The translations under genes and the position numbers were made by a program. DNA of 63,463 bases, the filler included, from Ministeria vibrans ATCC 50519 (lineage: Eukaryota > Protista > Filasterea): assembly GCA_943704425.1 (NCBI GenBank). It is 6 parts of 6 records of this genome, joined end to end, with 100 filler letters (N's around TTAATTAATTAA, not from the genome) between each part and the next. Parts side by side here need not be neighbours in the genome. Positions count along the whole stretch, not along the records: positions 12,968 to 28,964 come from CALSCP010002434.1; 5 more parts are not named here. One strand, 5' to 3'. The notes under the pieces were generated by a model, which made no database searches, was not told the DNA's origin, and saw only the letters and a program-made list of their open reading frames with translations. Shown here in pieces: positions 2,403 through 28,964 of this stretch. Positions within the stretch are counted from its first letter, which is position 1. Every line of letters begins with the position of its first letter.

Positions 2403-4371
2403 TCAAATGACCAAACGATCTTGCTCTGTCACCTGCGTTGCCTCTCTGGCCAAATCACGCTGTGCGCTCTCGTGGCACTTCCGCTTGCACTCCATCAGTG
2501 CCCTACAAATCAAATCGCATTCATTCCTTCCCACTCTAAAAGTTGCTTTCGCCATACTGAAGATCAGTGAACAATCGCAATTGTCTCAAATTGGTCTCAT
2601 GCGACTCTCTCAGTGCCTTTAGCTCATCTTTCAGCTACACAATTCACAAACAACAACACAAAAATCAAGCTTAATTTCACAAACTTCCGCAAAGGAATGA
2701 CAAATTCATTACAAATTCAACTCACCTGACGACTGAGATTTTCTTGCTCCTGAATCTTCTTTGTGTATGCATCGCGATGCGACTTCTTCTTGGTCTCCGC
2801 CACCATATCGGCGTTTTGGACGTACGTGCGCGTCTCCTCACTCGCTCGCGCCAAACTACATTCACCGCAGATTACACACACATACACCATGAGTTCACTC
2901 CAATCGCACTTCCGCGCCCTTACTTGACATCCACAATGTGAATGAGTGCGCGCAGCTCATGATAGCGTGTTTCGTTGCGACGCACATCCGTCTTGAGCGT
3001 CTCCAGCTCATCCCCTACCGCCGTGCGGTTCCCATCCAATGCCCTCGCCAGTGCCTCGTACTGTCCCTTCTTCTCGGTGTGCTCCGCTTCAATTTCTTGG
3101 GCCTCGGCGCGCAGTCGTCGCAGATCCTTAATCACCGGGGCCAGCTCTGTCTTCTTACTGCTTATTGAGTGTGTCAGCTGCTTCACCATCTCACTCATCT
3201 CGGCCAGCGTCTCCCCTTTGCGATCGTCCACCTCACTCTTGAGAGCAGACACCTTTTCCAGCTCCTCCTGTGCCTCCGCATACCCCTTCACTCCGCGTTT
3301 CTCCGCCAATGACTCCAGTGCTGCACCAGCCGCCGCTTCCTGTCGCTCCAACACCGCCACAGTGCGCTCCAACACCCCACTTTCCCCCTCGCACCTCGGC
3401 CAGCTGTGCCTTTTTCTCCTTGTACTCACTGCTTTTTCCACGCAACGCCAACACATACTCTTTAAATTCATCCGCGCGCAACACCCGCTCTTTCGCCCCA
3501 CTTCCATTCCCTCCTTCTTCGCCCTCGCTTCGCTCCTTCAGCTCCTTTTCGCTCTAAATCAGTGATGAGTGTCAGGGGCCCGATTGATCTTATGTGGCAT
3601 TAATCTGAGTCATTAAAGTCTCATGAGCACTAGGCTATAGCCAGTACTCCTGGGTCTACTTTTTGCTACTTTGAACTTTCTACTCTTCCTACCGCAGAGA
3701 GCTCCTCCTGTGCTCTTCGCAGTGTCTCCGCAGCCGCCTCTTTCTTGCGTCCAATCAGTGTCGCCTGCTGTCGGAATATGGCCAGCTTGTCATGCGCCGG
3801 ATTCAACTGTGCGTTGCGCCGCTCCAAAAGCGCATTCAGATCAGTCGTGAGCTCACGCACTGACTGTTGCAGTGCCGTCAGCTCTGCTTCGCTCACAGGC
3901 GGCTCATCTAAAATTCGCTGCAGCTCATTGCATCGCTTCTTCTTCTCTCCAATATCTAGTACACAAGTAAAAGTAATCAGTATCACGAATGATAATTATT
4001 ATTATCATGTCTTCTTCTTCTAATATTATTGAGCCCTTTTTTTCATCTCTCACCCTTTGGTAGTTTGTCCGTAAGCAAATAGCGATTCAACTTTGCCTCC
4101 TCCTCCAGCTGCCTCAGCAATTTCTCCGCACCGCCCGCCCCCGTCGCCTCTCGCAGGTCTCTCAGCTGCGCCTCCGTCTGTCTCAACCGCTGTTCCGCTC
4201 CCAACAGCTGCTGCTTCTGACTGTGCAGTCCTTCGTGCAAATGCGCTGCGCGATCCCGTTCTGTCCTCAGTGCTCGCGCCGCATCCACCCACTTGTCCCG
4301 TTGCGGAAACGATTCAATCTACAAACAGCATTCACATGATTGATATTATTAATCATTGTTCATCATAAAAA

Positions 4372-4457
<86 letters not shown>

Positions 4458-5550
4458 NNNNNNNNNNNNNNNNNNNNNNNNNNNNNNNNNNNNNNNNNNN
4501 NNNNNNNNNNNNNNNNNNNNNNNNNNNNNNNNNNNNNNNNNNNNNNNNNNNNNNNNNNNNNNNNNNNNNNNNNNNNNNNNNNNNNNNNNNNNNNNNNNNN
4601 NNNNNNNNNNNNNNNNNNNNNNNNNNNNNNNNNNNNNNNNNNNNNNNNNNNNNNNNNNNNNNNNNNNNNNNNNNNNNNNNNNNNNNNNNNNNNNNNNNNN
4701 NNNNNNNNNNNNNNNNNNNNNNNNNNNNNNNNNNNNNNNNNNNNNNNNNNNNNNNNNNNNNNNNNNNNNNNNNNNNNNNNNNNNNNNNNNNNNNNNNNNN
4801 NNNNNNNNNNNNNNNNNNNNNNNNNNNNNNNNNNNNNNNNNNNNNNNNNNNNNNNNNNNNNNNNNNNNNNNNNNNNNNNNNNNNNNNNNNNNNNNNNNNN
4901 NNNNNNNNNNNNNNNNNNNNNNNNNNNNNNGTAGTAGAAAAATTCATAACCAGATGCACTATTAATTATGCATTATCATTATGTTACTGACAGATGCAAA
5001 GCGCAAGAAGAAAGACGCCATAAAAAATCAAACACAAAGAGACGAGAACAAGATGTACACACCAAATCCAAAGGAGGTAAAAAGAACAGAACTTTTGATG
5101 TTGATTGATTTGGTTGCCAACGAAACGAAAGGAAAACCGTATCTCAAAAAAGAGCCGCAGCAGCGCTCTTTTAGATGAATATCAAAGAGGAGTGGGAAAG
5201 CCGCATTTACGGCAAGATGTAGGGGTCTACTTTCAAGCGCGACGCGACACAGGGCTCAGTTTTTGGAAAACACCAAAGTCTTTTTTCAAACGTTGAGTTT
5301 TGCCATTTACCTGAGGCGAAAGTTCGGCAAAGACATCGGTAAGAAGCTGAAGAAGACTCAATGGATGAGCGCAGTACTGGTCGAAGCTCACGAGGGAAAT
5401 GTTCTTGTTGAACGGTGGTGAGTTGAGACCGTCGACAATCGCTTTGGCCTATATTATCAAACATGAACAGGTAAATGGCGTGTCGACGGGCAGACGAGTG
5501 GCGTGAGAGGGTTCTTGTTCATAATGCAATCTTCGTACGTCACTTGACAT
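2403..5550 (-). CDS. IFT81: Intraflagellar transport protein 81, multi-exon, spans an N gap; apparent 1-nt frameshift near 3385
   Basis: N-terminus MSSD|AKAIVDGLNSPPFNKNISLVSFD..LLQLLTDVFAELSPQ; middle DEFKEYVLALRGKSSEYKEKK and GYAEAQEELEKVSALKSEVDDRKGETLAEMSEMVKQL; C-terminus LMECKRKC...QDRLVI*. Confidence 0.92.
4374..4457. repeat. (AAT)n microsatellite running into an assembly gap; similar (AAT)n, (AG)n and (AC)n tracts occur in many introns of the window
   Basis: Direct observation. Confidence 0.95.
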
Positions 5551-13076: not shown

Positions 13077-13124
13077 TCTTATTATTATTATTATTATAAT
13101 CAGCATTCGTTCTTTAAATAAAAT

Positions 13125-14195
13125 CTTACGGCTGGTGTGTAGGGAGGAGTGGAAGATGTAATGTTCTGCCAGTCGACGCCGTCAAAGAAGGCGTGTGCCT
13201 TCAACTTGGCCAGACCCGAGCCACCGACGTGGTTGCCAGCGTCGTCTTCGTCGTCGCGGCCGAGTCGGTCGACACGCGAGCGACACAGACCCTCGATAAG
13301 AGAGCGGGTTGCGTCAGCAATCTCAATAGCGTTGCCATCTTCGTCTTCAATGTCGAATTTGAGTGAGTTTTCGTAGTCCATAATTTTGCCGTAGGTGCCG
13401 ACAAGCGACTCGGAGTAGAAGGGGGTCTCGGCGAAGAGCATTTCGTAGAGGACGACGCCCAACGACCACCAGTCACACTCACGGCCGTACTCGCCCTTGC
13501 CTTCGATAGACTGGAGGATCTCAGGCGAGATGTAGTCGGGTGTGCCAACGGCAACGGTCGAGCGAACAAGACCCGAAGGACCCACACGACAGCACGAGCC
13601 AAAGTCGGCAAGACGAACGTGACCCTGCGCATCGAGCAACACATTGTCGGGCTTGATGTCACGATGGATGAAGCCGCATGAGTGCACATGCGCAATGGCC
13701 AAGATCATTTCGGCAATGTAGAAGCGACAAGCATCCTCAGGCAAACGGTCGTCGTGCTTCGACAGCAGTGTCAGCAAATCACCACCGTTGTAGTAGTTCA
13801 TCACAATGTACAGATGCGATTCGTCTTGAAACGCAAACCGTAGTTCCGTCACCCACCTAAAATAAGAAGAACAAGAAGAAGAAGAAGAAGAAGAAGAAGA
13901 AGAAGAAGAAGAAAGAGGTGAGTAATAAGATGAAATGTCTACACATAATCTTCGTCCTTTTCGTACTGGGGATCGGCGACAACGAGTAGGTCACGTTCCT
14001 CACGGAAACAGGCAGTCTCCTGACGCTTGAGCATGTCCCACTTGTTGAGTGTCTTCATGGCGTAGATGGACCCGTCGTGTTTACCGCGAACCACTTGGAC
14101 TTCGCCAAAGGCACCACGACCAATCACTTTTAATGTTTCAAAGTCGTCCGGGCTCAGTCGCAACTCACGAATCTATCGACAAAACAAACACAAAC

Positions 14196-17352: not shown

Positions 17353-18360
17353 TCAGACGACAATGTCACTGAATTCACGAGCAAGAGCCGCATTGAAAGA
17401 CTCGTGGTCGTCGAGGTAGAGGTGGTGGCCACCGGGAAGTGTGGCGACAGAGACGTCACGCATGGAAGGTGCATAGTGGTCGGCACTGCTACGCGACATC
17501 CAGTCGTATGTGCCGTAGTAAAACGAGACGGGGGTCGTGAGTTGCGACAGTCGCGGTCCAAGAGGGTTCCGTGCCCATGCTCCCACCTGAAGAATGCCGC
17601 ACATGGCATGCTCGCCACTCGCGGGTCCGTTCATGTTCGCGTGGTACGCATAGTCTGCCATCAGTGTGACAAGGTCGTCGTCGTGCCCGGCAAAGCGACG
17701 TCGCAACATTTTCAACGCAATCGAGGGACCTGCAGGACCAAGTACGCGCAGAAGCGCCTGTGGAGTCACGGCCTTGTCCCAGAGCCAACGGAAGAGGGTG
17801 AAGCGCCAGCCGAGACGACGCGCCTTGATCGCCTTCTCCTCCTCTTCGCGATCCGGAGCGGGAGGCACGCCAACGGGACTCACGAGTACCGCTTTGCGCA
17901 ACGAGTCGGGATAGCGCAAAGCAAAACAGCCCGTGATGAAGCCACCTAGGGAGTGACCAACAATCACGAGTTTCTCAAGTCCCATTGCCACACGCCATTG
18001 CTCGAGCGAGTCAATAAAAAAATCTTCGCCAGCCTGTGGGTCGGAGCGGGGAAATTCCGGTCGAGACGAGCGACCAAAGCCCAGCATGTCAATGGCAAAC
18101 ACACGGAAGCGAGAGTCTTCCGCGGCCTACACAGAAAACAATCATTTTTTCAGTAAAAAAATTAAGTGTATAATTTTGTGGTATAAGCGTACATGACTCA
18201 AATTACGACACCAAAACGCGAGTCCAGATGCAAAGCCGTGGACAAACACGACGGGGATGCGTGTGTCCGGCTGCTTCTCTGAAATGTCAGAAGGGATGCT
18301 GTGACTCGGTGGGTGGACTTCGACTGTGTTGATGAATGCTACAAGTAAGAACAAACGAGC

Positions 18361-18427
<67 letters not shown>

Positions 18428-18830
18428 GATGCTGCCAACAAAATCCCATGCAAGTCACAACCAAATCGAGTCGCCACTGGTTATATATTGGATTGACACA
18501 TCGGTCGGAACGACACACAGAGAGTCAGTGTGCGAAATGAGATAATGGCAACCAAGTGCCACGCAAGCCATACGAGACTCTCGCCGGGTAGTGGTGTACG
18601 TATGCGTCGCTGTATGAGAGAATGGGCCGGCGTTCAAGCGAAGAAAACGTGCTTGAGAGTCCCACAAACGCTTTGCGGCGCATAAGAAACCAAAAATAAA
18701 ACAAGACATGAATCGTACTGTTGTCGGCAATGGGCACCATGGTTTGCGTAATACGATTGTCGACGAACTGCCGGAGCAGGCGGTCCTCGGCACGCGCTGC
18801 AGCGGTGTCGCTGGTGGGAACCCAAGGCAT
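17353..18830 (-). CDS. ABHD4/ABHD5 (CGI-58)-like alpha/beta hydrolase, multi-exon; start may extend upstream
   Basis: WVPTS..AEDRLL, PVVFVHGFASGLAFW, AIDMLGFGRSSRP, GHSLGG nucleophile elbow, C-terminal GGHHLYLD (HX4D). Confidence 0.88.
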
Positions 18831-19627
18831 GACGGAGCGGAGAAAGGGTCGAGCAACGGAGCGCCGGACGGCAAGAACGGTCGAAATGGTCGCAGCAGGG
18901 GTCGTGCACGAGATCGTGGCCGGTGGGGCGCGTCGTGGATAGGCGACGCTGAGAAACCGAAACGAAATTGATCATTGATGTCAATAATAAATTAATTCAG
19001 TTTGATTCATTCGCTTGTCAGTCACCCGCACACGCCCGTCTAGCGTGCCTGTGGATCGTCAAACCGGTATGTATTGGTTTAGAGTCTCTCCATTCAGTGT
19101 CCTTGCATATGCGTTGAAGGGAAGGTGTCACAATGAATCTTCGTCTGGGACAAAGAGCATTATTTTTTATTTGGGGTCCACTAAATCGTGAGAACGTCAC
19201 TCTGTGTTGCCACTGTGGATGTATGGGTATATTTGGAGCATATGGTGACTTGTGCGCTGGCAAGATGCACGGAATATGTCCTGTGGGGGTCGCAATGGCG
19301 TCGTTTGTGTGTTGGACCAACATTTGGACTTGTTTGTGTCGTCTGCGCAACTCATCTGACGCAAATGGCCCGCTTTGCATTGCATTGCAGAGTGGAGTGT
19401 GTGGAGTGTGTGGTGTGTATGGACATGGCACCGCGTGTGTGTTGTTGTTTGGTTGTTTGTGAGTCAGTTCGTTTTGGTTTGTTTGAAAGTGGAGAGACGT
19501 AGAGTTCTCATTGGCTGGCACTCAGTTGATCGCTGAGGCCTCATAGAACCACGTTCCCTTGTGTGTGTGCCTCTGTTTGCTGTGATCCAGTTGTCACTCC
19601 TCACTCCTCTCTCTCGTGTCGTAGAAC

Positions 19628-22600
19628 ATGGCATTTGCTCAGAAGGGAAAGACAGTCGCATTTGTGCATAAGAATGAAGTTGCGCTCTTTCGGAAGTGCG
19701 AAGAGGGAACACAGCACATTGCGCACTCCATTGCGACGGTGAAGGAGGATATCCTTGTTCTCAGTCTGACAGTGAGAGGGGATGTGGTCTTTGCTTCAGT
19801 GGGAGATGATATTGTGCTGTGGTCACTCACTGAGCAGAAATGCGTCAAGAGACTCAAAGGACACACAGAGTACGAATTGGGTATGTTTGTGGATTGTTTT
19901 CTGACTTGAGTGTGTTTATAGGTTGGTGTGGTCTCTCAAAGTGTCGTCTGATGGAACGAAGATAGTGAGTGGATCATGGGACAAGACAGTCCGAGTGTGG
20001 GATATTCGCACTGGAACGTGTCTGTTCATTCTGGAAGGACATTCAAAGTACGATTTACCATTTGCAATGAGTGCCATTGGACTGATTTCCGTTTGATAGG
20101 TGGGTTAATTCAGTGGACATTTCCTCTGATGGAACCAAAGCACTGAGTGGTTCAGGTGACGNNNNNNNNNNNNNNNNNNNNNNNNNNNNNNNNNNNNNNN
20201 NNNNNNNNNNNNNNNNNNNNNNNNNNNNNNNNNNNNNNNNNNNNNNNNNNNNNNNNNNNNNNNNNNNNNNNNNNNNNNNNNNNNNNNNNNNNNNNNNNNN
20301 NNNNNNNNNNNNNNNNNNNNNNNNNNNNNNNNNNNNNNNNNNNNNNNNNNNNNNNNNNNNNNNNNNNNNNNNNNNNNNNNNNNNNNNNNNNNNNNNNNNN
20401 NNNNNNNNNNNNNNNNNNNNNNNNNNNNNNNNNNNNNNNNNNNNNNNNNNNNNNNNNNNNNNNNNNNNNNNNNNNNNNNNNNNNNNNNNNNNNNNNNNNN
20501 NNNNNNNNNNNNNNNNNNNNNNNNNNNNNNNNNNNNNNNNNNNNNNNNNNNNNNNNNNNNNNNNNNNNNNNNNNNNNNNNNNNNNNNNNNNNNNNNNNNN
20601 NNNNNNNNNNNNNNNNNNNNNNNNNNNNNNNNNNNNNNNNNNNNNNNNNNNNNNNNNNNNNNNNNNNNNNNNNNNNNNNNNNNNNNNNNNNNNNNNNNNN
20701 NNNNNNNNNNNNNNNNNNNNNNNNNNNNNNNNNNNNNNNNNNNNNNNNNNNNNNNNNNNNNNNNNNNNNNNNNNNNNNNNNNNNNNNNNNNNNNNNNNNN
20801 NNNNNNNNNNNNNNNNNNNNNNNNNNNNNNNNNNNNNNNNNNNNNNNNNNNNNNNNNNNNNNNNNNNNNNNNNNNNNNNNNNNNNNNNNNNNNNNNNNNN
20901 NNNNNNNNNNNNNNNNNNNNNNNNNNNNNNNNNNNNNNNNNNNNNNNNNNNNNNNNNNNNNNNNNNNCTTCTTATTATTGTTTTACTCTGTAGAACACTC
21001 TGCAAACTGGAATTCTCAACGGACCACCAAACACTCATCGTGCACTTTACAGACAACACCGCAGAGCACTTTCCCATCACTGACCTCATTCCGTACACTC
21101 AGCACACACAACAACAATCATTTCCTTCACACACAATTACCTATCCCGTTTCTCTATATTGTTGTTTTAGTGAACTGCCCACTGAGTCGAGTCACAAGAA
21201 GGCGTTCCTTTCGGCAATGGCACACGGGTGTGTCATCTCGCACTCGATCAAACTGCTGTTTCTGGGTGCAACCGAGGCAGGCAAGACAGCACTGCTTGCG
21301 GCACTGCAAGACGATACACTGCCCGGCAAAGACGACCGGTCAGTCGCCACTCGAATGCACCGCATGCGAATAGTCTTTGATGGCGAGACGGGCTACTTCA
21401 AGGCGGTGCCGCAGGAGGAGTTTCATTTGGCCAGTCTCATTGGCGAGCGCATGGTGGCAATGGAGACGGTGGAGGAAGAGGAGGATATCGCAGAGGAGAA
21501 ACACGACGACGTCGATTCAACTGACGAGTCAGGACCATCAACCGAAGTGGAGAAGACTGTGTCGAACCTTTCACCCCCCACACCCAGTGTCGCTCCCTCT
21601 CCACCACCACCAACGCCCACACCCACCATCGCTGCCACACCAGACACCCTTGAGATTGTGCAGTCTGTGCTGGAGACGGAACTGCGCGAAGAGCACGTTG
21701 ACATGGACTCGTTTGACTTTGCAGGTTCGTATATTGCACAAAGCCCAATCTATTTCTTTTTCTTCTTCTGACATCCGTTCTCGTTGATGTGTTTAGGTGA
21801 GTCGANNNNNNNNNNNNNNNNNNNNNNNNNNNNNNNNNNNNNNNNNNNNNNNNNNNNNNNNNNNNNNNNNNNNNNNNNNNNNNNNNNNNNNNNNNNNNNN
21901 NNNNNNNNNNNNNNNNNNNNNNNNNNNNNNNNNNNNNNNNNNNNNNNNNNNNNNNNNNNNNNNNNNNNNNNNNNNNNNNNNNNNNNNNNNNNNNNNNNNN
22001 NNNNNNNNNNNNNNNNNNNNNNNNNNNNNNNNNNNNNNNNNNNNNNNNNNNNNNNNNNNNNNNNNNNNNNNNNNNNNNNNNNNNNNNNNNNNNNNNNNNN
22101 NNNNNNNNNNNNNNNNNNNNNNNNNNNNNNNNNNNNNNNNNNNNNNNNNNNNNNNNNNNNNNNNNNNNNNNNNNNNNNNNNNNNNNNNNNNNNNNNNNNN
22201 NNNNNNNNNNNNNNNNNNNNNNNNNNNNNNNNNNNNNNNNNNNNNNNNNNNNNNNNNNNNNNNNNNNNNNNNNNNNNNNNNNNNNNNNNNNNNNNNNNNN
22301 NNNNNNNNNNNNNNNNNNNNNNNNNNNNNNNNNNNNNNNNNNNNNNNNNNNNNNNNNNNNNNNNNNNNNNNNNNNNNNNNNNNNNNNNNNNNNNNNNNNN
22401 NNNNNNNNNNNNNNNNNNNNNNNNNNNNNNNNNNNNNNNNNNNNNNNNNNNNNNNNNNNNNNNNNNNNNNNNNNNNNNNNNNNNNNNNNNNNNNNNNNNN
22501 NNNNNNNNNNNNNNNNNNNNNNNNNNNNNNNNNNNNNNNNNNNNNNNNNNNNNNNNNNNNNNNNNNNNNNNNNNNNNNNNNNNNNNNNNNNNNNNNNNNN

Positions 22601-24226
22601 NNNNNNNNNNNNNNNNNNNNNNNNNNNNNNNNNNNNNNNNNNNNNNNNNNNNNNNNNNNNNNNNNNNNNNNNNNNNNNNNNNNNNNNNNNNNNNNNNNNN
22701 NNNNNNNNNNNNNNNNNNNNNNNNNNNNNNNNNNNNNNNNNNNGTTGATCCTGCGGCGTTCCTGCGCACCCTTGAGCACCTGAGTCTGGTGTTCCGACAC
22801 GACGACCGACTTCTTGTGCCGATGCTGCTGCCCGACGACGCACCGTTTGTCGAGCAAGCTGTTGATCGACCGGCGCAGTTGTTCCTGTACCAGATGGTGG
22901 GTGGTGCGGTGTTGCCGGTGTCACTGGCGACTTTCCACTTGCTGGTGGTTGCACTGTGGCGGGAGAGTGTGGGGAATGCGGCGATCCAAGCGACTCAGCG
23001 GTGCACGAATGTGCTTCTGATGAAGGGCAATGGGATGGTGCCGGTGCGACTGCGACTGAACACGGGCGAGGCGTTTGTGCGTGTGGAGCTGTATGCGGAC
23101 ACACCTGCGGAGAATGTGCGTGACACGGTGGATGCGCTGATCGAGCGGGTGTGCCCGTCGACTGTGTCGCTGCGGTGGGGATGGCGTGGAGGGAGAGCAG
23201 TGGTCGTGCCAGCGCACCCGTTTGACACGACGCGACCGTTGTTTGAGGCTGAGCATGTGGTGGGGGCACCTGAGGAGCACCGTGAGGTGGGGCGGGTGAA
23301 TCTGGAGTTGATGGGACACGCTGGCGAACGACAGTGCAACGAACGTCTTGAGCTGTGGTGGTGCAACCAAGCAGGTCAGTTTATCAACCTTCTTTTTTTC
23401 GACCTGACCTTAACTTTAAACCTTTTTCATGTTAGTGACTGGCAAAGTGGCTGTATATTCACACGCAGCTGCACTGATTGTGGGTGTGAGTCGGTACAAG
23501 TCCTCCTCGAACCCTAACCTCGCTGAGTGCGATGATCTGCCGGGTGTTTTTAAGAGTGTGGTGGAGCTGAAGACTCTGTGGGAGGACCGCAATTTTACTG
23601 TGGAGACAGTGACGGACAGTCCGACCTCGAAGGTGACAATGGAGGCGATTGCTCGAGGCGCAAATGTGCTGGCGGGCAAGGCGGGAGAGTCCAAGACGTC
23701 GTTGCTAGTAGTTCATCTGATTGGACACGGCGCCGAGGACAGTGGCGGCGGACTCATTCTGAGCGACGCGAAGGTGATCACGAACAAGCTGTTGTCGCGC
23801 TTTGGTCTGCACTGTCTGGCGGGAGTTTTGCGGGAGCAAGTTCACTGGCGCGGATGCAACATTTTGGTGGTGTGTGACTTTTGCAACGCGGGAGCATTGG
23901 TGAGCGAGAACGGGGACCTCTCAATGAAAGCCAGCGTGGCACCTCTGCACGGCTATGCGCGACAAATGATTGCGTCGTCGATCAACGATGCATCTGCGTA
24001 TGCGTTGCCGGAGGGAACGCACATGACAAAAGCGCTGGTGGAGGCACTGGGGGGACAGACGCCGAGTGCCTTCCAAGCAGGCGAGACGGTGATCAGTGCC
24101 GTGGAGTTGTGTCGACGATTGAAGAGCGGTGGGCAGGGTATGCTGGTGGGACGCATTTGGAACGAGTGGGATCGCACAAGAAACGAGGGGGACATTTTTT
24201 TGTTTCGAGATGGAAGTGGAGTGTAG
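19628..24226 (+). CDS. WD40-repeat / Roc GTPase / COR-like / caspase-like peptidase C14 fusion protein (two internal N gaps)
   Basis: WD40 repeats (GHTE..IVSGSWDKTVRVWD, GHSK..ALSGSGD); G1 KLLFLGATEAGKT at ~21250-21290; G3 FDFAG at ~21712-21724; COR-like FLRTLEHLSLVF..LLVPMLLP; in-frame phase-1 intron 23375-23435 into ALIVGVSRY...LIGHG...CDFCNAG. Confidence 0.75.
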
Positions 24227-24564
24227 AATTGTGTTTTTTATTTTGATGATTACTTTGAGTTTCAGGATTTATATTTTCATCACTCGTATTTTGCCTATTC
24301 TTTCGGGCTAGTGACGTATTCTCCCACTTTGCCTTGCTTCGAACCCTCCTGCGCAGTGCTCCCGCCTCGTAGTGGATTCTCCGTTTGTGCACGGTACATC
24401 AGTCAAAATTCCACTCTGACGTCAACAGTGCCTGACCGCAATCCACCTCTCCTGCTGCTCTTTGTCTTCTGCTATGTTGCATTTGGGCGCATCCCAAGCA
24501 TTGTGGCTGTCGTTCGCGTCGTAATTCGCGCTTGTCTTGTTGCTCTGTAGATTGTGCGTGAGGA

Positions 24565-27500
24565 ATGAAGTCCTCCTCCTTTTGGTTGGGAATCTTCCTC
24601 CCGCTTGCTGTCGCTGTCAGCATCGTCGCAGCCTCTGATGAACCTTCGGACACGCTATTGGGTACGTTGCTCTATGCTGTAGAGGAGGCGATTTGATCTT
24701 ATTTCTGGTTTTTCGTTTTTTCCAGAGCAAAACGTCGAAGCACATTCTTTGCGGACACGACGCGAAGGACTCATGTGCGCCACGTAAGTCACACACCAGT
24801 CTCTTTTACATTTGAGCCCAACCCATTGGTGTGTTGTTTTCCGCCAGAATGTGTCTGAATGGGTTCACCTGTGCCACGGCGGGGGGCCCCTGCGACTGCC
24901 AGGGCAGCCCCTACTTTACCGCGCCCGACTGCGCCTTCCGCCGACTGTGCCCTTGTGCAAACGGCGGCAGTTGCATCACTTCAACGGTGACTGACCTTGC
25001 CAGTACCGCGTGTGTGTGTTCGTTTGAGTACCAGGACCAGCTGTGCACAACCATTGACACCTGCCTCAGCAGTCCCTGCTCCACTGGCGAGACGTGTGTG
25101 CTCAGAAACCACGCCTACGACATGGTATTGGTGCTTGACAACCGCGGTAGTCATGACAACATGACGCGATTGCTCATCGAGCAATACGCCATCACCTTGG
25201 TCAGACAATATTATTTTTGAATCACGAAAATAATAGAAAACGATCACTCAAAACGTCTTCACTTTTTTTCTTGGCTTCAGATTGAAAGTCTTCCCGACGA
25301 TGCACGCGCAACGCTTGTGGTCTATAGCGGTCCGCAGTACCCCGATTTGGCGAATCCCACTTTGGCGCGGCCATTACTCTCGCCAGGCTTTGTGGCGATG
25401 AACGAGATTGTGAGTGGAGGTCAGACGGGACGCGAGGTGCTGCTCAAGTCAATCGCAGAGACGTTCAGCGATTCTTTCTTGCCTTGGTCGGTTCTATGGG
25501 ATGCGCTGCATGACGCTATTGCGTATGCTCTGACTGCTGGAACGAGTGGCAAGAGTGTCATTGTGGCGCTGACGGACGGTGTCGACGAGGTGAGCGCACT
25601 CAACGAATACGCAGTCGACAAGACCAATTTCCCTGACGGCGATGCCATTGGCGCGACGGGTGCCAACGACGGCAATCCTCTCGACGACTATGCCACGGGC
25701 GTGTGCATGTCACCGCTTCCCCTCCACGTTGTCGGGTTTTCTGTGATCGATGCCAATTTGCCACTGCTTCAGGAGGTCGCTCTCACATCCAGTATGAAAT
25801 TTTCTATTCGTATTCATGGTGAAGATGCCGTCGTTTGACGTTGTTTTTGTAGATGGTGGTACCTATCAGCATTTTTCAAACGCTCCTCTGTACAACTTTC
25901 TGGGACCGTCGTTCTCCGTTGAGTCTGGCTACGATTGCGTGTCGAGAACGGGACCGTGTGCTTCGAGTCCGTGTCGCAACGGCGCGACGTGCAGGGACGA
26001 TGGCGTCGCATTTGTTTGTGCATGTGGCTGTGGCTATCAAGGAACGTTGTGCGCAACAAACATTGACGAGTGCGCGTCGAACCCCTGCCAGAACGGCGGG
26101 GCGTGTACGGATCGTTCGTGCGGGTTTTCGTGCAGTTGCCTGACAGGCTTTACCGGCAGTGAGTGTCAGACGAACCTGGAGGAGTGCGCGTCGAACCCGT
26201 GCCAGAACGGAGGGACGTGTGCTGATGGAGTGAATGGCTATGCTTGCACGTGCGCCTGTGGCTATGAGGGAACGCTGTGCGCAACAAACACCAACGAGTG
26301 CGCGTCGAGTCCATGTCAGAACGGCGGGGTGTGCTCGGACGGTGTTTGTGGCTACACTTGTGCTTGCCCAAGTGGCATTTTTGGGCCTGAGTGCCAGACC
26401 AACGTCGACGAGTGTGCTTCAAGTCCCTGCCAAAATAGTGCAACCTGTACCAATGACGTTGACAGGTTTACGTGCATTTGTGCATGTGGCTATGAGGGAA
26501 CGCTGTGCGCAACAAACACCAANNNNNNCATGTGGCTATGAGGGAACGCTGTGCGCAACAAACACCGACGAGTGCGCGTCGAGTCCATGTCAGAACGGCG
26601 GGGTGTGCTCGGACGGCGTGTGTGGCTACACTTGTGTGTGTTCGGTTGGATATGCTGGTGCAAGTTGCCAGACCAACGTCGACGAGTGCGCGTCGAACCC
26701 GTGCCAGAACGGAGGGACGTGTGCTGATGGAGTGAATGGCTATGTTTGCACGTGCGCCTGTGGCTATGAGGGAACGCTGTGCGCAACAAACACCAACGAG
26801 TGCGCGTCGAGTCCATGTCAGAACGGCGGGGTGTGCTCGGACGGTGTTTGTGGCTACACTTGTGCTTGCCCAAGTGGCATTTTTGGGCCTGAATGCCAGA
26901 CCAACGTCGACGAGTGTGCTTCAAGTCCCTGCCAAAATAGTGCAACCTGTACCAGTGACGTTGACAGGTTTACGTGCATTTGTGCATGTGGATATGAAGG
27001 CTTGCTGTGTGAAACAGCCATTAACGAGTGTGCCTCGAGTCCTTGCCAAAACAGCGGCGTGTGTTCAAGCAACGTTTGTGGTTACACGTGCGCTTGTTCC
27101 GTTGGATTTTCCGGGGCCGACTGCCAGACCAACGTCGAAGAGTGCGCGTCAAGTCCTTGTCAGAACAGTGCGACTTGTGTCGACTTAGTTGCAGGGTTTA
27201 CCTGTACCTGTTCCACAGCTTCAACGGGCGAACGGTGCGAGACGATTCTCGATGAGTGTGCTCAGCTTGCCATGCCGTGTCTCAACGGAGGTGTTTGTCT
27301 TGTGGTTTCGGGTGGTGTACCCGCATGCAGCTGTCCCCCAGGCTATACGGGCGAGGCGTGTCAGAGCCGTGTTGATGTGTGTGCCTCGTCTCCCTGTCCC
27401 AGTGGCTCTACATGCACGCTAGTGAGCCTGACGACTTTTTCCTGCGTCTGTCCGGCCGGTTTTGCAGGCGTGACGTGTGCCGAACTTGACGAGTGTCAGT

Positions 27501-28964
27501 CTTCGCCGTGTGCCACAAGTGCTACTTGCCTTAATCTGGTCGACACATTTCAGTGCGTGTGTCCCGTCGGCGCGACTGGTCTTCTCTGTGACCTCCCGGA
27601 TCCGTGCCTTTCGTCGCCCTGCCCCGCCTCGTCGTACTGCAACGTGTCGGTCGCAAGCGGCACCTTTACATGCATCCTTGCCTGCAGTCCATCGCCCTGT
27701 CTTAACGGTGGTACGTGCGTCACTGGCACCACTGCTGACACCTGTGTGTGTCCGGTGGGCTATACGGGCGCACTGTGTGCCTCTGTCGTCAATCCATGTG
27801 ATAGCAATCCCTGTCACAATGGCGCCACGTGCTTTCCTAACTTGCTTGCGCAGAATTTCACGTGTACCTGCCTTGCGGGGTTCAATGAGACCTACTGCGC
27901 CGGCGTGGTGGGCAGCACCGATGACGATGCGGCACTCAGCGCCACTCCCTTTAATGTGCCGCTGTGGATTGTAATACTTGTTGCCATGTCACTCTTGATT
28001 GTCTTGGCCATTCTCGTCCTGCTTGCCGCCGCACGCAAGCGCCGTCGTGAGGACAAGGAGATGCGTCGTCTCATGGCCAGCCACGAGGTGGATCAGCTCA
28101 CGGCGAACAGTCGACACAACTCCATTGCATCGTCGACCATGCATTCGACTTCAATGACCGTAGCGTCTCAGCATTGGACCAACGACACTCTGGGCAACGC
28201 CTCTTCCTCTCCAACCACGAGTGCAGGTGGTCGCAAGGGCTCGCGCACATCTGCCATCCTCCCGCCAACCCAAAACAACCCCAGCCAAGCAGCGACCTTG
28301 CCGCCTGCGTCGTCGGCACCACATGGCGTAGCGGGCAGAGGTAATGACGTGATGGATTCGTCGCCGCCGTTGCTCGTGACAAGCGGTCGCCATACATCGA
28401 TGGCGCGCTCTCGTCGCTCGAGCAGCCAAACGTTGGATCGAGACATGTCGACTGACTCGGTGTTTGAGTCGAGTCTCACGTCACTTTTGGCCGCATCGGG
28501 CTCGTCGTCGCGTGGCTACTCAAGCTTACCATCGGGCCCGGGGGGCAACAACTCGGTCTCCTTGCCTGGCCTCACTGACTGGATTGATGATACACCGATG
28601 TCGCCAAAGACCATTCGTGAAGAGGAAGAACCCGACGATGAGAAGACCAACTTGCTCGACTCTCGTCGATCAAGTTTCAAACGTGCTCCTCGCTCCATCC
28701 TGACCGCCTCGTTGGGTGCTGCCGTGGCTCAGGCGAGTCTCAGTCGTCGTGGGGGGTCATCTGCAGTCGATGGAGACGTGTCAGCAAATCCCGTTGCAGA
28801 ATGGCAACAGCAACGAAATGAGGCTGGCGACGCCACCTGGCTCGTCGATGCCGATGACGGTGGTTGCATGCAGGAGGAGGTGCAGCAGGTTGCCGCGCCG
28901 ATCGTGACGTCTGTTAGTGGTGGCAACGATGCCCCCCCTCCACCCCCGCCGCCTCGATCGGAAG
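24565..28964 (+). CDS. Type I membrane protein: signal peptide, EGF, VWA domain, about 17 (cb)EGF repeats, TM helix and long Ser/Pro-rich cytoplasmic tail; 3' truncated
   Basis: MKSSSFWLGIFLPLAVAVSIVAA; VWA DMVLVLDNRGS...IVALTDG...LHVVGF; repeats NVDECASNPCQNGGTC; TM VPLWIVILVAMSLLIVLAILVLLAAA-RKRRR. Confidence 0.88.

Follow-up and report, generated by a model that had tools for sequence, protein, structure and literature searches.

A WD40-Roc-COR-caspase gene of Ministeria vibrans and its lineage-specific family, a candidate repertoire of intracellular receptors

In a stretch of 63,463 nucleotides (nt) from the filasterean Ministeria vibrans ATCC 50519 (assembly GCA_943704425.1), hereafter the window, positions 19628 to 24226 constitute one expressed multi-exon gene. 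By analogy with a gap-free paralog, its protein would comprise about 1,300 residues. The domain order is an eight-exon WD40 propeller, a divergent Roc domain with a disordered insert, COR-A/COR-B, and a caspase-fold protease with an intact catalytic dyad. The Roc-COR-caspase core is carried by at least 35 loci, which form a lineage-specific family. Drawing on analogy with known systems, we propose, at a probability of roughly 0.55, that this family is a repertoire of intracellular receptors of the NLR or 'conflict system' type, of which the window gene would be an expressed mosaic member. All coordinates refer to the whole stretch. The locus is situated on contig C2434 of the assembly, which is eukaryotic and comprises 29.7 Mb in 2860 contigs.

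Structure and expression of the gene

On the plus strand, open segments between 19628 and 24226 lead from WD40 blades through a P-loop exon (KLLFLGATEAGKT ... FDFAG) and an assembly gap (gap 2) to a 210-residue piece that matches nothing in Pfam and a 263-residue Peptidase_C14 segment. We mapped contigs of four runs, X6 and X17 of the RNA type and X1 and X3 of DNA, on positions 19400 to 24400 and compared the locus with its paralog on contig C2206 (L026) and with a metagenome scaffold (L030). The features are as follows.

19625–19869, plus strand: first coding exon with the N-terminal WD40 blades; start codon at 19628–19630; matches to beta-propeller Pfam families are weak
19870–19921, plus strand: intron of 52 nt, GT-AG, phase 2; joint 19869/19922 in X17 RNA contigs
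19922–20047, plus strand: WD40 blade exon of 126 nt, phase 2 at both ends; Pfam WD40 match and flanking RNA joints
20048–20099, plus strand: intron of 52 nt, GT-AG, phase 2; joint 20047/20100 in an X6 RNA contig
20100–20160, plus strand: next WD40 blade exon, beginning only, interrupted by gap 1; X1, X3 and X17 contigs extend beyond 20160
20162–20967, no strand: assembly gap 1; putative content, from the C2206 equivalent, the remainder of the blade and three to four one-blade WD40 exons
20994–21092, plus strand: last, degenerate WD40 blade or linker exon; RNA contig matches begin at 20994; aligns with a WD40-like blade in L030
21093–21170, plus strand: intron of 78 nt, GT-AG, phase 2; joint 21092/21171 in X6 and X17 RNA contigs
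21171–21724, plus strand: exon for the N-terminal half of Roc with P-loop, switch I region, acidic/Pro-rich insert and G3; best Pfam match Roc, below the cut-off; motifs invariant in paralogs
21725–21796, plus strand: intron of 72 nt, GT-AG, phase 1; X6 and X17 RNA exits at 21726 and resumes with the letters of 21799–21805
21797–23374, plus strand: large exon for the C-terminal half of Roc (G3 to G5) and COR-A/COR-B, including the unread gap 2 (21806–22743); assigned from the C2206 exon, hhalign, Foldseek and VIA-align
23375–23435, plus strand: predicted intron of 61 nt, GT-AG, phase 1, and mosaic breakpoint relative to C2206; conserved position and phase, paralog RNA, DNA contig X3 record 22
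23436–24226, plus strand: caspase-like (Peptidase_C14) exon with His at 23726–23728, Cys at 23882–23884 and stop codon at 24224–24226; Pfam, AlphaFold2 model, Foldseek, dyad, X6 RNA
24227–24249, plus strand: 3' untranslated region and poly(A) site; end of an X6 RNA contig with 23 A absent from the genome

Four introns are removed in the RNA. Three of them are covered by the joints 19869/19922, 20047/20100 and 21092/21171. Past 21726 the RNA carries the letters of 21799–21805, followed by those that DNA contigs show beyond 21805, which establishes 21725–21796 as the fourth. At the 3' end, an X6 contig terminates at 24249 with 23 non-templated A residues, and the RNA is therefore polyadenylated. 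This contig (23468–24249) shows no difference from the window over 782 nt, i.e. the protease exon of this very copy is transcribed. All readable exons are open and their splice sites are intact.

At the 5' end, RNA matches begin at an acceptor at 19622–19625 and are preceded by a different exon of the 5' untranslated region. Because the C2206-type leader contains an in-frame TGA 15 nt ahead of the junction, the start codon is the ATG at 19628, which makes the WD40 domain N-terminal. The original prediction, made from the window sequence, had placed WD40 repeats at this end, and the match to Pfam PF00400 at 19923–20096 (E-value 3.6e-10) agrees with it. A search of the window and of all paralog loci for the upstream untranslated exons seen in the RNA did not find them. 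Either they are the paralogs' own, or the leader of this copy is located elsewhere.

Each WD40 blade corresponds to one exon of 123–129 nt, and the introns in between measure 50–56 nt and are all in phase 2 (window 19625–21092; C2206, L026 minus strand, 3879–5340 counted on the reverse complement). Since phase-2 introns flank every blade exon, skipping, duplication or shuffling of these exons would leave the frame intact.

Neither of the two gaps is bridged by letters of the window itself; they arose because the sequence in this part is near-identical in multiple copies. Beyond 20160, contigs of X1, X3 and X17 continue the WD40 blade in frame (...GDKTIRVWSL) and match C2206, and RNA before 20994 reads the final part of the WD40 exon upstream (...INSFPLKxNSK). 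At gap 2, the frame runs on beyond 21805 for 718 nt in a DNA contig and for 567 and 1010 nt in RNA contigs, while contigs upstream of 22744 add 81 letters. Between about 19210 and 23374 of the window, the C2206 paralog, which is free of N in this region, shows 94–100% identity in exons and introns alike, and its corresponding intervals measure 805 and 941 nt, compared with gap estimates of 806 and 938 nt. Four WD40 exons (Pfam WD40, 3e-12) with the exon and intron sizes and phase given above occupy the gap-1 interval of C2206, and its gap-2 region lies inside a single open exon of 534 codons (L026, 2269–3870, minus strand). The same order of WD40 exons, G1 exon, a 546-codon exon and protease exon is found in L030, a gap-free scaffold of 5539 nt. 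That one transcript spans both gaps, as was originally proposed, is supported by the in-frame contig extensions and by the open C2206 paralog. For the window copy itself the gaps stay unbridged and the last splice joint unseen.

Protease and Roc-COR domains

The protease is a C14 peptidase according to profile, predicted fold and dyad. Against a Pfam Peptidase_C14 cut-off of 21.4 bits, the window exon scored 23.7, a paralog 29.3 and the relative P0006 32.4. Its AlphaFold2 model reached a predicted local distance difference test score (pLDDT) of 88.5 and a predicted template modelling score of 0.91. A Foldseek search with this model returned 267 matches in the PDB at E ≤ 0.001, with MALT1, Yca1 and caspase-8 in the lead and caspase-9 and caspase-1 also present; between paracaspase, metacaspase and caspases the structural comparison shows no preference. 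The dyad motifs G96 H97 G98 and D147 F148 C149 are invariant in 24 of 24 sequences and align to HYSGHG and DSCHSG of Arabidopsis metacaspase-4. It follows that the C14-type domain with His in LIGHG and Cys in DFCNAG was recognised correctly at the outset, and the P-loop (21265–21288), FDFA(G) (21712–21724) and both catalytic codons lie where they had been placed. A homolog search with the protease exon yielded only short metagenome fragments of the same family. Feature-based look-alikes of the protease are bacterial caspase-domain proteins. A complex prediction with two copies of the domain gave a score of 0.00, which counts neither for nor against dimerisation.

Profile searches and folding were done exon by exon, so the intron-split Roc domain was scored in pieces. 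The P-loop reads GATEAGKT, and the G3 motif DFAG extends from 21715 to 21724 and into the next exon; GxxxAGK[TS] and FDFA are invariant in six paralogs. A Roc-type G4 motif, GTHID (THxD), and a GSAK-like G5 are found in the C2206 exon spanning gap 2. An acidic and Pro-rich insert of about 90 residues separates switch I from G3 (window 21440–21670). Throughout the family this insert is acidic and rich in Pro, Ser and Thr, spans 70–110 residues, and differs in length and sequence in every paralog.

For the large exon, 13 paralog copies were aligned. When the profile of this alignment was compared with PDB sequences, seven matches were obtained, all of them to the Roc domain of LRRK2 at E-values of about 0.1. 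A search of 1.84 billion representative proteins gave six matches. Four of these are family fragments; the remaining two, the only and distant relatives outside the family, have Pfam Roc scores of up to 89.7 bits and a COR-A below the cut-off, one of them also with a weak COR-B; hhalign aligned about 150 columns to both Roc-COR relatives with 96% probability. When the AlphaFold model of the large exon was submitted to Foldseek, the top 28 PDB matches were all Roco proteins (6hlu, 3e-6; the COR-only structure 3dpt, 1.6e-4; LRRK1; LRRK2). VIA-align gave a Z-score of 10.7 to the COR domain of the C. tepidum Roco protein (CtRoco), with 289 of 299 residues aligned, and 7–8 to LRRK1 and LRRK2. From these sequence and model comparisons we conclude that the exon pair encodes a strongly divergent Roc-COR tandem, and that the protein belongs to the Roco proteins by fold and remote homology, curated profiles not being reached. 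The proposed Roc-type GTPase with a COR-like segment is therefore upheld by motifs, hhalign, Foldseek and VIA-align, but not by the Pfam cut-offs for Roc and COR.

A lineage-specific family and the mosaic origin of the window gene

Across the genome there are 43 matches to the COR-like segment, 66 to the protease and 49 to the G1 exon. At about 30 loci the COR-like and protease matches share a strand and are separated by 61–113 nt, and the G1 exon is located 1–1.6 kb upstream; the N-terminal WD40 exon is common to at least six loci. Paralogs are 45–60% identical, and the mean column identity of the Roc-COR-caspase core is 65%. This family of at least 35 members had been overlooked in the original prediction.

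The architecture varies among the members. On contig C2371 (L029, 3429–6790, plus strand) a long TPR array follows Roc-COR in frame (TPR_12, E-value 2e-135), and a second, partial COR-like segment and a protease exon come after it. Just upstream of the C2822 member, one reading frame contains LRRs and another, 950 codons long, has Roc-like matches as well as matches to NB-ARC and DUF7779 (L028, 80–1546, 1582–4434 and 4542–7676, all on the plus strand); these may belong to one giant gene or to a cluster of receptor-like genes. Copies with in-frame stops and fragmented matches (C85, 1667–5499; C2586, 7963–9031; one with seven TGA codons in the protease part) are probably pseudogenes. Apart from the family, the genome contains six canonical Roco genes with Pfam Roc and COR-A above the cut-off (C837, C2679, C1569, C1613, C1711 and C945; frames of 900–1870 codons). 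L030 is about 73% identical to the paralog C2467 at the nucleotide level. As L030 comes from a separate metagenome assembly, the family also occurs in a related environmental organism or strain. Sequencing runs with matches to the piece include samples from marine sources, seawater and algal cultures.

The last intron deserves a closer look. The 61-nt GT-AG intron at 23375–23435 joins the COR and protease frames in phase 1. A GT-AG phase-1 intron of 44–84 nt is found at the equivalent place in 16 of 16 distinct loci, in nearly all of which the acceptor lies 26 nt before an HAAAL motif. RNA matching the window up to 23376 continues with letters of C2206, C894 and C1606 immediately after the homologous intron, which demonstrates the COR-to-caspase splice for these closest paralogs. 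The original prediction of a clean in-frame intron is in line with its canonical ends, its phase, its conservation and its removal in the paralogs' RNA; the joint of the window copy itself was not among the RNA contigs. Uninterrupted open reading frames of 896 codons (C985) and 1044 codons (C2822) were considered as proof of fusion and rejected, since the introns there are stop-free multiples of three (96 and 123 nt).

When the window is compared with C2206, the identity of 94–100% holds up to 23374 (99% at the exon end), the intron cannot be aligned, and the protease exon is only 74% identical. In addition, the X1 depth is about 280–317 on the shared part and 68 on the protease exon, i.e. about fourfold higher. 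The identity break and the excess depth show the gene to be a recent mosaic: through duplication or conversion, its sensor-switch part came to be joined to different protease exons, and the conserved intron marks the breakpoint. DNA contig X3 record 22, from a separate run, covers 23350–23491 and contains shared exon, window-specific intron and protease exon without any difference. That the breakpoint coincides with the very intron flagged in the original prediction had gone unnoticed there.

As to the genomic surroundings, a very large EGF-repeat protein is encoded downstream (25816–28964, plus strand; Pfam EGF, E-value 2e-57, at least 13 repeats) and continues past the end of the piece. Upstream, on the opposite strand, lie a protein kinase domain (13100–13852, minus strand; 2e-45) and an alpha/beta hydrolase (17353–18102, minus strand; 6e-20). 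A (GA)n microsatellite at about 18370–18440 is read as a poly-Arg-Glu or poly-Leu-Ser run in the list of open reading frames. Upstream of the paralog C894, on the same strand and across an assembly gap, there is a 1429-codon frame with DUF3638 (2e-58) and DUF3645 (L025, 5610–9899, minus strand).

Proposed function, alternatives and known systems

In a receptor of the proposed kind, the repeat domain would bind the trigger: WD40 in the window gene and TPR in one paralog, with LRR and NB-ARC frames just upstream of another. Roc-COR would turn the trigger into a nucleotide-dependent change of the oligomeric state. Proximity or relief of autoinhibition would then activate the C-terminal protease, whose cleavage of cellular targets would serve defence or regulated cell death. 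This scheme is modelled on Roco biochemistry, on caspase-fold proteases activated by proximity or release, and on bacterial AP-GTPase conflict systems. Since the C. tepidum Roco protein tends to be monomeric when GTP is bound, the switch could run in either direction. The traits that we count in favour of receptors are the large and divergent family, the pseudogenes, the variable repeats, the arrangement of one blade per phase-2 exon, and the swapping of modules at the effector intron.

A more specific version can be entertained tentatively. The protein might act as a one-chain apoptosome, in which Roc-COR takes the place of a STAND ATPase and the caspase-like executioner resides in the same chain. 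The family would then be an immune or death repertoire diversified by shuffling or alternative splicing of blade exons and by exchange of effector exons at the conserved intron.

Several observations weigh against a receptor family of this architecture. Both gaps are unread in the window copy, where a disabling stop or frameshift could sit, and the joint 23374/23436 was found in no RNA contig of X6 or X17. Pfam Roc (PF08477) reached 19.3–20.7 bits with the exons taken separately (window 19.3), below the cut-off of 27, for a domain that is split by an intron and carries an insert of about 90 residues. COR-A and COR-B (PF16095, PF25497) gave no match at E ≤ 0.1, either with the 534-residue exon or with the piece from the window. 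The Roc-COR model is middling, with a pLDDT of 64 and template modelling scores of about 0.3. Family size alone is no proof of an immune role, and metacaspases have roles other than in cell death as well (PMC3734836).

The latter point leads to the alternative that best withstands the evidence, although we consider it rather unlikely. The architecture would be real, but the proteins would be GTP-regulated processing proteases in ordinary signalling, quality control, the cell cycle or stress, and the expansion would be unrelated to conflict. Besides the documented non-death roles of metacaspases, this is favoured by the response of brown-algal ROCO genes to many stresses (PMC11378527), by the good conservation of the Roc-COR-caspase core among paralogs, and by the lack of unusual similarity among the protein's WD40 blades. 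On the other hand, a set of at least 35 divergent copies with pseudogenes, variable repeat sensors and swapped modules is typical of conflict-driven families, and the near absence of relatives among the 1.84 billion proteins is unlike housekeeping genes.

It is quite improbable that the window copy is non-working, be it a recent chimeric duplicate or a partial mis-assembly in which a paralogous 5' part was collapsed on a unique protease exon, with gaps that may hide disabling changes. Such a scenario could explain why both gaps fall exactly within the multi-copy part, where the X1 depth is raised, why identity breaks off abruptly at the intron, and why the last joint of this copy is missing from the RNA. 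However, its protease exon is transcribed without a difference and polyadenylated, the independent X3 contig passes from the shared exon through the copy's own intron into the protease exon, and no readable exon or splice site is damaged.

Very improbable, too, is the assignment to some other Ras-like GTPase followed by an unrelated helical or winged-helix region. The sub-threshold Pfam matches for Roc, COR-A and COR-B, the PDB profile E-values of about 0.1, and the Z-scores of 5–7 that several unrelated winged-helix and alpha/beta domains reach on parts of the model would be compatible with it. Yet all significant relatives, whether in sequence or in fold, are Roco proteins, the COR match stands clearly above the next families, and G4 is of the Roc type. 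Scarcely credible is the idea of two adjacent genes with separate products, the protease starting at an ATG at 23429 within the supposed intron: this ATG does open a reading frame of 265 codons and the splice of the window copy is unseen in RNA, but the closest paralogs, which are spliced from COR exon to protease exon, lack such an ATG, and the phase-1 intron recurs at the same place in all 16 loci, as does the spacing of 61–113 nt in about 30.

For the receptor reading, there are precedents in other lineages. LRR-Roc(AP-GTPase)-COR proteins with C-terminal caspase effectors have been predicted in bacteria as counter-invader systems (Kaur, Burroughs, Iyer, Aravind 2021, PMC8195603). They share with the M. 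vibrans family the succession of repeat sensor, Roc-type GTPase, COR and C-terminal effector, which may have the caspase fold, as well as the many paralogs per genome and the predicted switch-plus-effector logic. The bacterial systems are prokaryotic, have N-terminal LRRs and vary the effector between paralogs, whereas here, in a eukaryote, WD40 (TPR in one paralog) is combined with a nearly always caspase-like effector in a gene of many exons. A sequence link to these systems beyond Roc was not detectable by the search of 1.84 billion proteins.

ROCO proteins with a C-terminal peptidase have also been put forward as candidate immune receptors in brown algae and other species of the stramenopile-alveolate-rhizarian (SAR) group (Zambounis et al. 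2012; Teng et al. 2024, PMC11378527). Like the present family, these are expanded in a protist lineage, have a separate exon for each repeat and phase-2 introns throughout, and include a subgroup with a C-terminal peptidase for which an immune-receptor role was proposed. Unlike it, they combine LRRs with a trypsin-like peptidase (IPR009003) instead of C14, and their Roc and COR domains meet standard profiles. The view that the architecture is new thus has to be narrowed. Roc-COR-caspase proteins of bacteria (PMC8195603) had already been predicted and ROCO-peptidases of SAR species (PMC11378527) described, but we found no paper on a eukaryotic WD40-Roc-COR-caspase family.

With characterised Roco proteins (LRRK2, LRRK1, DAPK1 and C. 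tepidum Roco) the gene shares the Roc-COR tandem by fold and the Roc-type G4 motif THxD, and LRRK2 also has a WD40 domain. In LRRK2, however, this domain is C-terminal, the output of the characterised proteins is a kinase or death domain, and none of them has a disordered Roc insert or a protease output. The logic of repeat sensor (WD40, LRR or TPR), nucleoside triphosphate (NTP) switch and death effector, along with lineage-specific expansion, recalls the Apaf-1 apoptosome, NLRs and fungal NWD/HET-E proteins. Those STAND receptors rely on NB-ARC or NACHT ATPases that form rings and recruit caspases through adaptor domains, whereas here a small-GTPase/COR module and a protease would be joined in the same chain. 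Pfam searches of the window and C2206 exons found no NB-ARC or NACHT in the gene; NB-ARC occurs only upstream of the C2822 paralog. The gene is therefore not a member of the STAND/NLR class and may at most work like one. The protease, in turn, resembles metacaspases, the paracaspase MALT1 and bacterial orthocaspases in its predicted fold and in the HxxGHG and DxCxxG dyad motifs, and its best structural matches are MALT1 and yeast Yca1. Its identity to solved C14 members is about 13–15%, and no characterised member is fused to Roc-COR.

Roco proteins have been studied almost only through LRRK2, with its kinase output and its link to Parkinson's disease, and how a signal passes through Roc-COR is debated. 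In a natural family whose Roc-COR tandem would drive a protease, signalling could be followed simply through cleavage. Should the receptor reading hold, eukaryotes outside the STAND lineage would possess NTPase-switch immune receptors with built-in caspase-like executioners, matching the predictions made for bacteria. Since standard profiles barely register the family and hardly any match to it was retrieved from 1.84 billion proteins, annotation has probably missed comparable repertoires in other protists.

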